Shown: one piece after another, positions 45,701 to 62,710 of the stretch
Layout of the letters: the number at the start of each line of letters is the position of its first letter
Numbering within the stretch: the stretch's first letter is position 1
Assembly: GCA_965112155.1 (NCBI GenBank)
Contig: OZ218103.1
Length of the DNA: 64,000 nucleotides
Reading direction: 5' to 3' (one strand)
DNA from: Podarcis liolepis
Taxonomy: Eukaryota
Program-made: the position numbers and the translations under genes
The notes under the pieces: model-generated
Seen by the model: the letters and a program-made list of their open reading frames with translations, nothing else
Told to the model about the DNA's origin: nothing
Databases searched by the model: none

Positions 45701-48700
45701 TGCAGGCTCTTGTCCCACCTCATAAGGATTCTTTCCCAGTATTGGTTAATGGGCTCCCCCTGCTCATCTTCTTTTTCATCAGGGTCTTCAGGCACAGAGC
45801 TGGCGCAACTGCAGCGGTTACACATGGCAGAGATGGCTCAGCTGCATGCAGAGATTGGCAGCCTGAGACATGACACAGAGAGGATGAAGCTAAGACATCC
45901 CAAGAGGGGGTCTCCACTACCCCGCCTGCCACCTCCTATAGCTCCACCCCTGCCACCTCCTCCCCCTCTTCTTGGATTGCCTGACCCTACCTTTCCAGCT
46001 AGTAACATGGTTAGTGCCCCTTTAACTTGGGAAACCTCAGGCAAAAGTCATACTGAATAAATGCTTTTGGAGTGGAGATAGTATAAAAATACTTCTATAG
46101 TTTCAATAATTCAGAGCTATCATCCTGTGTGGTTGGCTCTCTCCATATCTGTGTTCACTCCAGAAAGATGCATCCAGTGGTTCATGCTCTGCTCGTTGCA
46201 AATATGCTGACCATTTTGCTCAGGGGTGAATGATTTATCTGAAGCTGTTGAGTTATATTCTTAAGAGTTTCCTTGGGGCAGCAAGCCTCTTTATTCCTGC
46301 TAAGACTGATTGCTGATATTTCCTTTTTCTGTTATTTGGTAATGTAAAACAGCTCTCATATTTCTGCCTGCTATAGGACCCCATGAGAGCATCTGCCACA
46401 GCTATGAGCCAGTACTTCCTGGACCCTTCTGATGCCCTGGGACCAGCTCCCTATGATCCGGCGTATGTCATTTCTATTACCTGTATCATTCTGGGTTGGG
46501 CTAGGGGGAGGGCAGCATATGTTATTTTTTCTGTCTCATTCTTGCATAGAGTATTTGTAGACACTGCCATGTAAAGTGAAGATGTTCATTTTTTTTCCAT
46601 CCTAATGCCATTTCTAGGGATACATTTTGGAATCTAGCCTGTTGAGTCTTCTGGACTGCAGCCAGCTTATAGAAAATAGCTGTTGTTAAGTGTTTGGGGT
46701 GGTGGGAGATAGGCTGTATGCCTAAACCCTCCTAATTCCTGGAAGTGCCTAGAACCCCTGGAATTTCACTCAGATTGGGGTGGCATGCAAGCTGTGTTAA
46801 CTATTACATGAGTGTGACAAATTATCATCTCTCTGCAGGTCTGGCTTTGTGATATTCTATGATTTTCTTTTGGGCCTGGATCCCACATTCTATCAAGTCT
46901 GCCTGGTCTCCGGCCTGTTCCGTAATGGGCAAGAGTTGGGCAAGCCCACCCCACTGCCCGTTGTCTCCTCTGATATGGGTCAATACCCACAGTATGTGAC
47001 TGATGGGCAAAGAGGGTGCTGCGCCATCTTAGCAGCTAGGCAACCAGTCCCAAGGTGAGTTTCAGTGGCTTTTGCCATGACATGACATCTCATCTCTTCT
47101 GTTCCCGGGTCATTATCTGGGCAGCCATTCCCAGTTGGCAAAGTTATTTGTTTTCATTGTTTCCATGTATATAGTGTACAGCAAAATAATGCTCAAGACA
47201 AATGCAATGATAAGTGGTAGAAGATTCCTTTCTAAACAACAATGCAAAGAAGACCATCTACCATGAACTGCTTTTATCCTGACCCATTAGAAGACTCAGG
47301 GCCCTATCATCTTGGCATGGGAACCACTCACTCTGGGGATTAGTATGAGCTTCAGATTGCCATAAAATAGGCTGTTTCAGTCCAGTTTTGCACGTGCCAG
47401 ATTCTTGTCTGTTCTTATTTAGATGTCAGATACGTTAGTGTCATATAGAAGATAGTCTTCTTTGCCAAACCCCCATGTGAAACATGGCTACAGTGAACTC
47501 TGTATTCAGATTTGTAGAGAAAAAGGTAGGCTTGTATGTATTACCTTTGTCTGTGCTTGCTTTTCAGAGTCCTTCCTTCAACCACCATCACCCTCATAAC
47601 CGAGCTTCAAGCATCTGGAGGCTTTGATGCTTATGGGCTGGAGATCCAAAATTTGGCCCCCAGGGGGTGGGCCAAAATCAACATCTTTGACCATCTACAT
47701 CAAGTGATGTGTGGGCGCTGGAAGATCCCCATCCGAGTGCTTCCTATGAAGCCAAGCCTCACTCCAGAACAGTTGAATGGTGTGCCCCAGGTGAGGACCT
47801 TTAGCAAGGGTCAGTGCTGAGTGCCCAGAAAATTATTTCCTGACCAACATGAAGGGAGAGTGTCATGCTCGTGCTCTCAAGAGACTCATGGTGAACCATT
47901 AACATTGGCCCTTAACACTGAGCACCTACTTTCTGCATTGTGCTGGGGGTGTGATTTGAGACAGGTTCAATCTCAGGCCTCATTGACTGAATAGAAACAT
48001 TCCTGGAATGATGGCTGTTCCTCAGAACACCTTGGCCAGATCAAGATAAATTAGTCCAACATCGTCTTCAGTTATTTTCGCATCTGTTTTAATCCCAACC
48101 AGACCACACCTTGTTTTCTCCTCACAGTTGGGTAAAGCAGAGCTGTACTTGCGACTAGTGAATGCAAGAGATGCTGACATGCAGTCGATGGCAGAGATTC
48201 ATCCAGGCAATGCCTCCTTGTACAAATACCCTCCTACAGTGAGTTGAACTGCATGGCATTATTGTCTCTTTCGAAGTTATTTTTAACTCTTTTTCGAGTT
48301 AGCATTGCTTGAGGGCAGATTCTGAAAAACAGGTTCTTTGTGTCCTCAATATTTATTTGCTGCAGAGAACCAGAATGACACTAAAAAGACAATTTGAAAT
48401 AATAGATAAATGGTGAAAAATTGGGAAACCACAAGGAGAACATGAGCACAATAATAGCCTCCCACTCCTGTTCCCCCAAAACTGGTACTTGGTGGGATAC
48501 TACCTCTGATCCTGGAGGTTATAGCCATCATAACTAGTAGTAGCCACTGATAGCTGAACTGGAGGTTAAAGCTATCCAGTATCCATGGAAGATAAGGCTA
48601 AGAGCAAACTCAGTGAAAATGTATTAATTAGATATTTCAAAGGAATAAATGAAGTATGCTACCATCTGACTGAAGCCTTTTAAAATCCCAGCTATTAACT

Positions 48701-60700: not shown

Positions 60701-62710
60701 ACCAGCTCTTGACCCACTTGTTTTTACCCACTACTATAATTTAGTCCAAAGTCAGCAATCAGTTTCTAATTTCAAGATGTTGTTTGGGGTGTGTACAAAA
60801 TTAGTAAGCTTTACAATACTGTTATTTTGTATTGTTCTGGGAACACTTCTCACTATTTCTCTCACTTAAGGAATCTCTTGTAGTAGTCTACTAAAATAAT
60901 GCTGCAAAGAAACAGTAGGTGGTTTGTTCTTTTCTGGTTCAAGGTTTGTTCTTTCCTTAACAGATCATCCTGGCTTCCTTATCTGAAGGGCAATGCAGCA
61001 GCATTATGAAGAGCATGCTCCAAAAGAAAGAGGTATGAGACTAGTTAAGCGTAGAGCAGTAGCTTCACAAAACTTATCCAAGAAGTAAAACGGTGAAGTA
61101 AGGGGAGCACTTGCAATCCTTTTCTAGATCGTATTATACAGGGTAGTAACAAAAACTGATGGAAAAGGTAGACCACACAAATCCCAATTACCCCAAACAC
61201 TACTACAAGTGCAGAAAGTTCCAAGGAGCATGGCTGACAAAGATTTCTGGGAGCAAGACAGAAGGTGGTTTGCAACACCAGCCCCACCATCATACAAATA
61301 CATGGTAAAAAAATAGTGGATTCCAAAATGTGTGTTTGTGCTGCAGAGAGATCTTCGCTGAAGACTGCTAAGTCAGATAAACCAATGTACAAGACTATGT
61401 TTCTTTATAATGTAATCTTTAAATTGAAAATTTACCTGAACCAGTGGTTCTAAAATGTTTTTCTTTCGGCCACACTTCCAGAATATAAACTTGCTCACGC
61501 CATACCAAATTGTTTGGCAAGAAATACATTGGGGAAAAGAAACTCAAATTAGTGTTTTTGTGAATATATTTATCCATAGTCTGCAAATAAAATTTTTTTG
61601 ATACTATACTACACTGAAATGTTTAAATATTTGATTGTCCTTGAATCTTCTAGCCACACCCTTTGAGAACCGCTGCTTTACAGATTCATTTGGGTGCAAT
61701 GTGGAACATTTATGTGGTCTACTAACCCTGGAGTAGAAGGCTCCAGTATAGAGTAAGGAGGCACTTGGATATTTTGTAATTATACGAAAACCTCAACAGC
61801 CTCAGGTATGACAGGTGCCTGCAATCCATGTGAGCCCTACTTTATCCCCAACATTTCACCATTATTCTTGTTCAACAATCACACACATATAAAGAATGTA
61901 CTTAATGCTATAGTTTGAAACTTCCAGATCCAGTTGGTGCCAGGTGCATCTGTGATTGTGCGCATAGCAGATGGAAGATGGGATGAAGAATTCAGATATA
62001 CATCAGAGGTACGCATACTAAGTGAATCTAATCATCACAAACTTTTCATTCCACCCAGGAAAACAAAAGGATGAGCATACTAATTAACCACTCACTGGAG
62101 AAAACCAATCTCACTTTCATGTTTACCATTTATCAATTTTCTGTGCAGCCAAATTGTAAAACAGAGCCAGATGACTTGTTTATGGCGGATTGTCAGAAAT
62201 CATGTATACTAAAAAGGTTACCAGTAACTGTTCAGAGCACAAACTAACCACACATTAGATCATCACATCCTAGATGACCTTGTCATTTGTTTCAGAGTAT
62301 TGATCAATCTTATCTGCCAGAGACAACAGATCTGTACAATAAGGAACCCTCTGGAAGAAAAATTGCAGAATTAATGTTGCAGGAGACTTCAAGAAAACAG
62401 GTAAAATTGGGCTATAGCCCTATTTATGAATGGAACAAAATTGAGACAGAAGCCACAAACAGAAAACATATTCAAATTGTGGCCAAAAGGAAGATTCAGT
62501 CTTTCTCCTGTTTTCTGTTTGTGGCTTCTGTCTCAATTTTTGGATTATTAATATAAGATTTAGAACATAGAATGGTTTGGTAGTGCTTTGTGTGCTGCTT
62601 ATGTGCTGCTTACTTCTTACTGGTCCACATTCTCCATAAGCAGTGCAGGTTTAATTGTGACTTGCATGTTTTTCTTTCAGACAAAATTGAAGGCATTGGA
62701 ACAAATTTAA
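39784..62710 (+). CDS. CCDC17: Coiled-coil domain-containing protein 17, long form, about 33 coding exons and 1520 aa. Exons 39784-39972, 40350-40487, 41230-41292, 42048-42165, 42950-43109, 43333-43452, 43895-44028, 44741-44875, 45783-46009, 46377-46462, 46839-47054, 47568-47790, 48128-48238, 49383-49540, 50543-50630, 52315-52427, 52640-52781, 52962-53054, 53844-54051, 54159-54265, 54723-54863, 55720-55874, 56181-56301, 57057-57173, 57589-57686, 57780-57992, 58390-58564, 59040-59222, 60027-60278, 60964-61032, 61928-62008, 62296-62400, 62681-62710
   Basis: Exon 1 [24 protein letters not shown], plus [53 protein letters not shown] and [13 protein letters not shown], match CCDC17 as I recall it. 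All exons have AG/GT ends and the phases join into one 4569-nt ORF. The linker exons 50543-50630 and 52315-52427 and the terminal exon are the least certain. Confidence 0.82.
44176..44212. repeat. (CA)n microsatellite
   Basis: About 18 CA units. Confidence 0.95.
53222..53446. mobile_element. Tc1/mariner (Tigger-like) MITE in a CCDC17 intron
   Basis: TA|CAGTGGTATCTTGGGTTA...TAACCCGAGGTACCACTG|TA. Confidence 0.85.
55030..55610 (-). mobile_element. CR1 LINE fragment
   Basis: Minus-strand QERDL.G.IVDS.IKM..QC...VRKA.SMLG.TRKG...IMALYK, typical of CR1 ORF2; similar to 38690-39025. Confidence 0.8.
56400..56565 (+). mobile_element. Decayed CR1 fragment
   Basis: [20 protein letters not shown] resembles CR1 ORF2 MIEVYKIMHG.EK.DR. 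Confidence 0.55.
58965..58993. repeat. (TG)n microsatellite
   Basis: About 14 TG units, 46 nt upstream of the 59040 exon. Confidence 0.95.
62437..62540. repeat. Perfect 32-bp inverted repeat with 40-nt spacer
   Basis: AAAATTGAGACAGAAGCCACAAACAGAAAACA (62437-62468) is the exact reverse complement of 62509-62540. Confidence 0.9.

Follow-up and report, generated by a model that had tools for sequence, protein, structure and literature searches.

CCDC17 has been described as a marker of ciliated cells, together with FOXJ1 and CCDC78 (PMC13096173), and it appears in a list of ciliary tip proteins recovered with DNAAF9 by co-precipitation from mature multiciliated airway cells (PMC12700831). We analysed a 64,000-nucleotide stretch of genomic DNA from Podarcis liolepis (contig OZ218103.1 of assembly GCA_965112155.1), here called the window, the plus strand of which carries at about 39.8-62.7 kb a gene that is likely the lizard orthologue of CCDC17 in an ancestral long form with four C2 domains, named M1 to M4 from the N-terminal side. 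The closest described protein is the mammalian-type, short CCDC17 (Pfam PF28455), which derives from the same gene and contains the finger, the coiled coil and M1. The short form stops after the linker exon that follows M1, as in the alligator RefSeq CCDC17; the long form has about 800 amino acids (aa) more and three extra C2 domains. A literature search found no paper connecting CCDC17 with a C2 domain.

Outside this family, the closest described domains are the C2 domains of PI3K (PF00792), the DHR-1 C2 domains of DOCK proteins (Dock180, 3l4c; DOCK8, 7cly) and the C2 domain of Aida (2qzq). The CCDC17 modules share only 9-17% sequence identity with them, and no Pfam match of CCDC17 to this class reaches the gathering score. 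In addition, the four C2 domains of CCDC17 follow one another after a finger and a coiled coil; kinase, guanine nucleotide exchange factor and Aida N-terminal domains are absent, and M2 and M4 carry long inserts. The ciliary and centriolar proteins CEP120, C2CD3, CC2D2A, RPGRIP1/RPGRIP1L and NPHP4 and the Tetrahymena ciliary-tip protein C2D1 (9nw3 chain 3A), which was called non-conserved by its authors (PMC11642885), have only the common fold in common with CCDC17, and none of them was found in a profile search of all PDB sequences. Likeness to such proteins may indicate what C2 domains can do in cilia, and by analogy only; it does not indicate orthology.

Identification of the CCDC17 gene

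The window is vertebrate genomic DNA without any run of N. Our model of the gene consists of 29 exons, with GT-AG at every junction and a frame that is open for 1450 aa, or for about 1410 aa if the terminal micro-exon of the Podarcis lilfordi model is used; the 1520 aa given in a preliminary description of the locus were therefore somewhat too many. By using tblastn with the CCDC17 proteins of gecko (P0002), alligator (P0029), the toad Bufo (P0011) and P. lilfordi (P0054), all exons of the window were covered in collinear order, and the identity of P0054 to the window was 95-100% per exon. This collinear similarity extends over the whole length of annotated long CCDC17 proteins, which are known from reptiles, amphibians, fishes, molluscs, annelids and cnidarians, and bears out the gene name proposed in the preliminary description. 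The joined, spliced model was used locally for frame and length only, while the searches were carried out with single exons or with the orthologue proxies P0059, P0010 and P0054.

The encoded domains follow in the order C2H2-like finger, coiled coil, proline-rich stretch, M1, disordered linker, M2, M3, three-helix linker and M4 with helical inserts. The finger of the form C-x2-C-x12-H-x4-C and the poly-Pro exon, both of which had been noticed before, are present; the finger matches Pfam zf-C2H2 with an E-value of 7.3e-4, which is under the family cut-off. The tail exon has an open reading frame (ORF) that extends to 62556 if unspliced, and in the P. lilfordi model it is followed by a micro-exon, which ends ...KALEQI near 62707. 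Exon 5 (43333-43452) gave tblastn matches to the squamate proteins P0054 and P0002 only and none to the alligator or toad proteins; this exon may be confined to one lineage or evolve fast.

C2 fold of the four modules

AlphaFold2 models were made of two database orthologues, P0059 and P0010. The first of them, P0059, is an incomplete Varanus CCDC17 (1033 aa), which spans M1 to M4 and has about 72% identity to the window. Its model, based on 49 aligned sequences, has a mean pLDDT (predicted local distance difference test) of 77 and contains four beta-sandwiches at residues 32-187, 283-474, 520-675 (pLDDT above 90) and 791-976; the linker at 213-280, which is the counterpart of exon 13, is disordered (pLDDT below 50), and the linker at 721-766 is helical. 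DSSP applied to the AlphaFold2 models assigned eight main strands to each of the four domains. The top matches of P0059 in a Foldseek search against PDB were the ferlins otoferlin, myoferlin and dysferlin (E 1e-10), DOCK5 and E-Syt2, together with the PI3K C2, Dock180 DHR-1 and Aida C2 domains. Ferlins and E-Syt2 rank first because several C2 domains align in series; unlike ferlins and E-Syts, CCDC17 has no transmembrane anchor, no SMP, FerA or DysF domain and no PF00168 match. A further, unbiased structure search, independent of Foldseek, was made against 48,161 representative chains; its best 50 rows were all C2 domains, as were those of the other unbiased structure search. Across M2 and M3 together, tandem alignments were obtained with BON1 (276-679) and E-Syt2 (278-681). 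The P0010 model, which was used for M4, has a mean pLDDT of 79.5, and the top Foldseek matches of its M4 were the DHR-1 domains of Dock180 and DOCK8, PI3Kdelta and Aida. The structural matches to solved C2 domains are strong and extend over most of the domain. As modelled, M1 to M4 are all eight-stranded C2 sandwiches, nearest to the C2 domains of PI3K, DOCK DHR-1 and Aida, as the preliminary description had proposed for the four modules; the support is direct for M1, M2 and M4, and for M3 it is indirect.

Sequence searches gave a more limited picture. Pfam PI3K_C2 (PF00792) matched M3 of 11 orthologues out of 32, always in the same position and with a best E-value of 1.4e-5, the scores shown being 15.6-20.7 bits against a gathering score of 26.4 bits; PF00792 is also precomputed on the CCDC17 of X. 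tropicalis. The classical C2 family (PF00168) matched none of the 32 orthologues at E 0.1, and Pfam searches with 18 single exons of the window gave no match to a module, PI3K_C2 included. When the Atlas was searched by features with the M1 exon, clusters of PF28455 (CCDC17_C) came first, with clusters of Aida_C2, NPHP4_C2_2nd and PI3K_C2 lower down; nothing usable came from the M4 exon as query. Because the M1 exon finds PF28455 clusters, we concluded that M1 is the domain already named CCDC17_C in Pfam 38. A profile of 49 orthologues found no homologue among all PDB sequences; hence, no structure of CCDC17 has been solved, and none of the C2 structures is linked to it by sequence.

Relationship among the modules

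The four modules were cut from an alignment of 60 orthologues and compared with hhalign, with 25 column shuffles each as the null. M2 and M3 aligned with a probability of 89.5% (P 2e-6, 124 columns, score 45.9), M3 and M4 with a probability of 47.6% (P 1.9e-4, 153 collinear columns, score 33.4), and M2 and M4 with a probability of 24.9% (P 8e-4, score 30.4). The scores of these three pairs exceed those of all 25 column-shuffled controls (maximum 21.5), and comparison of the modules with the coiled-coil region as a control gave P values of 0.12-0.8. At the level of sequence profiles, M2, M3 and M4 are thus paralogous repeats. The profile similarity expected among all four segments was found for these three; M1 is not demonstrably a sequence paralogue of M2 to M4 and, according to the models, shares their fold only.

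The preliminary description had reported a series of five motifs that recurs four times. All 20 motif strings are present where they had been placed, and 18 of them are contiguous plus-strand translations inside the module ranges. The other two span exon junctions: LLLKVY crosses 56301/57057 and appears as ATLLLKVYSINRL after GT-AG joining, and GIKFALD crosses 58564/59040 and appears as TYGIKFALDRG after the same kind of joining. In the P0059 model the five motifs of each module lie on the equivalent strands b1, b5, b6, b7 and b8 of each of the four sandwiches. Because of this placement in the model, and because the M2/M3/M4 profile scores are above the shuffled controls, the recurrence of the motifs is not due to chance.

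Orthologues and distribution of the long form

A HMMER search with the M4 exon region (59967-60281) against 1.84 billion representative proteins gave 23 matches. None of the 18 whose names were looked up came from a mammal or a bird; the named matches are CCDC17 or 'uncharacterized' proteins of gecko, toads, alligator, bonefish, an oyster and others. With the M1-M4 part of Bufo CCDC17 as query, a word search gave 63 proteins, of which most are long forms (1300-1500 aa). Their sources are frogs, salamanders, a caecilian, turtles, lizards, alligator, bichir, gar, eels, bivalves, annelids, a brachiopod and cnidarians, and PF28455 and PF28454 are precomputed on nearly all of them. A search with Nematostella CCDC17 added corals, anemones and gastropods. 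In all, about 70 long forms of 1300-1700 aa are at hand, from amphibians to cnidarians, sturgeon included. Clusters from Chlorophyta, to which the Atlas had pointed, found no confirmation, as only metazoans were obtained when the Nematostella protein was used in the word search, and a word search with the M4 exon in a restricted length window returned only a 103-aa fragment.

CCDC17 models of snakes, salamander and lungfish cross the M1-M2 junction. The models of four snake species (P0083-P0086) are 814-918 aa long, contain M1 and M2 and end before M3, which reflects either a lineage-specific truncation or incomplete annotation. The Logan contigs that encode long forms of the cnidarian type (about 1440-1470 aa) are only 4.7-5.8 kb in size. 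Since contigs of this size leave no room for introns, they look like mRNA-derived contigs with one ORF; their transcript nature was judged from the size only.

A stop codon over the exon-13 donor and the short form

The exon-13 donor has the sequence AAAAG/GTGAGA. If it is left unspliced, the reading continues as AGG TGA and the protein ends ...KPNKR one codon past the donor. As the donor overlaps a stop codon, the same locus can give a short product that ends after M1.

RNA was mapped on positions 47500-53100, by using contigs of three probable RNA runs (two studies, a related species) and the raw reads of one RNA-seq run. A 4.65-kb RNA contig contains the joints 47790/48128 and 48238/49383, is unspliced from 49383 to 52159 and then continues with the joints 52159/52640 and 52781/52962. 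The second study shows the same joints and has separate contigs across 49383-52047, and one raw read supports the joint 52159/52640. The 2.6-kb stretch 49541-52159, an intron in the long-form models, is contiguously transcribed in the RNA contigs of both studies.

The alligator RefSeq CCDC17 (P0028, 532 aa) ends at the homologous ...KPDQR, and isoform C (P0029) continues into M2. The current alligator RefSeq has three loci, CCDC17 (532 aa), LOC106737630 (610 aa) and LOC132250708 (217 aa), represented by P0028, P0027 and P0004; an older annotation has the 1390-aa isoform C. Because the alligator protein ends at the homologous arginine, the overlap of donor and stop seems to be conserved between lizard and crocodilian. 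We concluded that the one-C2 short form is real and conserved, since the RNA contigs read into the TGA and the alligator RefSeq protein stops at this very residue. Across animals the four-C2 form is probably real as well; in this lizard it would be the product predicted by the gene models. Use of the exon-13 donor would decide between the one-C2 and the four-C2 protein. Of the single four-C2 protein that had been described for the locus, the open gene model stands, while the RNA contigs examined have a stop codon between M1 and M2.

Several points weigh against reading the locus as one gene for a four-C2 protein of cilia. The structures are those of orthologues with about 72% (Varanus) and about 54% (coelacanth) identity and not of the window's own protein. 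The C2 assignment of M3 depends on sub-threshold Pfam matches, tandem alignments and likeness to M2. Comparison of M1 with M2, M3 and M4 by hhalign gave P values of 0.11, 0.02 and 0.03, respectively, and scores of 16.5-21.0 at control maxima of 17.7-19.4, M1-M3 and M1-M4 being barely above the shuffle nulls and M1-M2 not above them. The long-form RNA joint 49540/52640 was not seen in the four RNA runs. In alligator, the RefSeq annotation divides the locus behind M1, and pieces with M2 to M4 are separate 'uncharacterized' RefSeq loci in Amia, Dendrobates, Anolis, coelacanth and skates. The functional part of the reading draws on a predicted fold and on two statements in the literature.

The splicing data bear above all on an alternative that we regard as possible although rather unlikely, namely that two separate products come from the locus: a short CCDC17, with finger, coiled coil and M1, that stops at the TGA at 49542, and an independent protein of three C2 domains (M2-M4), whose first exon would lie immediately upstream of 52159. 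In that case the long form, at least in amniotes, would be an artefact produced by homology-based gene modelling. The RNA contigs of the two studies, unspliced through the exon-13 donor and spliced at 52159/52640 in agreement with the raw read, are consistent with this alternative. The ATG at 51987, in frame with M2 through the same joint, is a possible start of such an M2-M4 product, as deduced from the sequence. In the newer alligator RefSeq, LOC106737630 starts just before M2, beside the 532-aa CCDC17 with its homologous end, and Amia LOC136715039 (805 aa) consists of M2-M4 only. However, the read-through contig itself physically links M1 exons to M2 exons, and the exon-13 donor is a strong consensus whose phase fits the exon-14 acceptor exactly. 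Moreover, the four snake models join M1 and M2, the salamander and lungfish models cross the same junction, and the cnidarian-type long forms occupy single ORFs on apparently mRNA-derived contigs. The absence of the joint 49540/52640 proves nothing in this respect, because assembled contigs drop minor isoforms. We therefore keep the reading of one gene with a short and a long form.

Possible role in motile cilia

The association with cilia that the preliminary description suggested for CCDC17 agrees with the two literature reports cited at the outset. For a CCDC17 with one or four C2 domains, the coiled coil would dimerise the protein, and the non-classical C2 domains of the dimer would together serve in motile cilia as a module that binds surfaces multivalently. 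The ligands of such an array would be phosphoinositides of the membrane and/or the tubulin lattice, as is the case for other C2 proteins of cilia and centrioles. By analogy, from the fold and the two literature statements, this is the most likely mechanism. A wider scenario appears unlikely to us in its entirety: that CCDC17 is an ancient protein, present from cnidarians to vertebrates and switchable through the stop-overlapping donor, that its long form bridges membrane and microtubules at the tip of the motile cilium, and that mammals and birds kept the short form only.

The preliminary description compared the locus with the transition-zone proteins NPHP4, RPGRIP1L, CC2D2A and C2CD3, and a function of CCDC17 at the ciliary transition zone like theirs would fit its multi-C2 and coiled-coil architecture and the NPHP4_C2_2nd cluster in the Atlas feature search (0.83, under the trust level). 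We consider this improbable: dozens of unrelated C2 proteins match at least as well, and the only localisation statement found is the ciliary tip (PMC12700831). What remains of the comparison is a shared, very common fold, without sequence homology to any such protein in the Pfam and PDB searches. The weakest alternative, that the modules are another kind of beta-sandwich (ASH/MSP, Ig-like or PapD-like) or that the motifs recur by chance, could be based on the single exons without Pfam family match and on a BLASTP comparison of the M1 exon with the M4 exon that found nothing, but is close to refuted by the structure searches, the equivalent strands of the motifs and the M2/M3/M4 profile similarity above all shuffles.

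Features of the locus

The positions of the exons and of the elements around the exon-13 donor are given in Table 1. Two perfect dinucleotide microsatellites lie in introns of CCDC17, (CA)19 at 44175-44212 and (TG)14.5 at 58965-58993. The window is richest in GC at about 36000-40000, a region that takes in exon 1 and the sequence just upstream; its GC content is 0.47-0.49, compared with about 0.40 in the rest, and long GC-rich ORFs are present on both strands at 37.5-38.3 kb; the GC-rich stretch is probably a CpG-island promoter.

Table 1. Exons and other elements of the CCDC17 gene in the window
Feature	Position	Strand	Evidence or remark
Exon 1, start codon and C-x2-C-x12-H-x4-C finger	39787..39972	+	tblastn of P0011, P0029; donor GT
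Exons 2-9, coiled-coil region and proline-rich exon	41230..46462	+	P0054 identity; junctions AG/GT, in frame
Exons 2-5	41230-41292, 42048-42165, 42950-43109, 43333-43452	+	
Exons 6-7	43895-44028, 44741-44875	+	
Exon 8, poly-Pro	45783-46009	+	
Exon 9	46377-46462	+	
M1 exon a, strands b1-b4, GFVIFYD	46839..47054	+	P0054 match; strands from P0059 model
M1 exon b, b5-b7	47568..47790	+	Atlas match to PF28455 CCDC17_C clusters; RNA joint 47790/48128
M1 exon c, b8, ELYLRLV	48128..48238	+	RNA joints 47790/48128, 48238/49383
Linker exon 13, Pro-rich, predicted disordered	49383..49540	+	Donor AAG/GTGAGA at 49540/49541 used by long-form models
Segment unspliced in RNA contigs	49541..52159	+	RNA contigs of three runs; donor 52159/52160 joined to acceptor 52640
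TGA overlapping exon-13 donor	49542..49544	+	Donor unused: protein ends ...KPNKR after M1
ATG in frame with M2 through 52159/52640 junction	51987..51989	+	Frame deduced from sequence; ORF 51987-52163
M2 exon a, b1-b2, LGFILD	52640..52781	+	RNA joints 52159/52640, 52781/52962
M2 exon b	52962..53054	+	P0054 match; RNA joint
M2 exon c	53844..54051	+	Motif translation; P0054 match
M2 exon d	54159..54265	+	Motif translation; P0054 match
M2 exon e, b8, ATLRLHV, and proline-rich M2-M3 link	54723..54863	+	
M3 exon a, b1-b2, GFDLYID	55720..55874	+	
M3 exon b, b3-b5, ends ...LLLKV	56181..56301	+	Partial PI3K_C2 matches of orthologues map here and to next exon
M3 exon c, GWAALNVF	57057..57173	+	
M3 exon d	57589..57686	+	Motif translation; P0054 match
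M3 exon e, b8, ATLLVRL, and start of M3-M4 linker	57780..57992	+	
Helical linker and start of M4 b1 (...YGIK)	58390..58564	+	Three helices before M4 in both models
M4 exon b, FALDRG..., b1-b4	59040..59222	+	
M4 exon c	60027..60278	+	HMMER query exon that retrieved long forms
M4 exon d, helical insert between b7 and b8	60964..61032	+	Helices 938-958 of P0059 model
M4 exon e, b8, ASVIVRI	61928..62008	+	
C-terminal tail exon, 3' end uncertain	62296..62412	+	P0054 match

Significance

Gene models, family Pfam entries, including one for M1, and public structure predictions already exist for CCDC17; what is added here is the domain annotation and the arrangement of splice donor and stop codon. The advance is therefore at the level of annotation and does not concern a new kind of system. 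Although CCDC17 is in wide use for marking multiciliated cells, no function has been described for its domains. If four C2 domains of the PI3K/DOCK/Aida type were present in the ancestral protein, binding of phosphoinositides or of the tubulin surface would become a concrete hypothesis for its function, and one would understand why only a small C-terminal domain is seen in studies of the mammalian protein. With a stop codon over the exon-13 donor, a short or a long form can be made in a simple way, and this arrangement may preserve a trace of how the gene became shorter in mammals.

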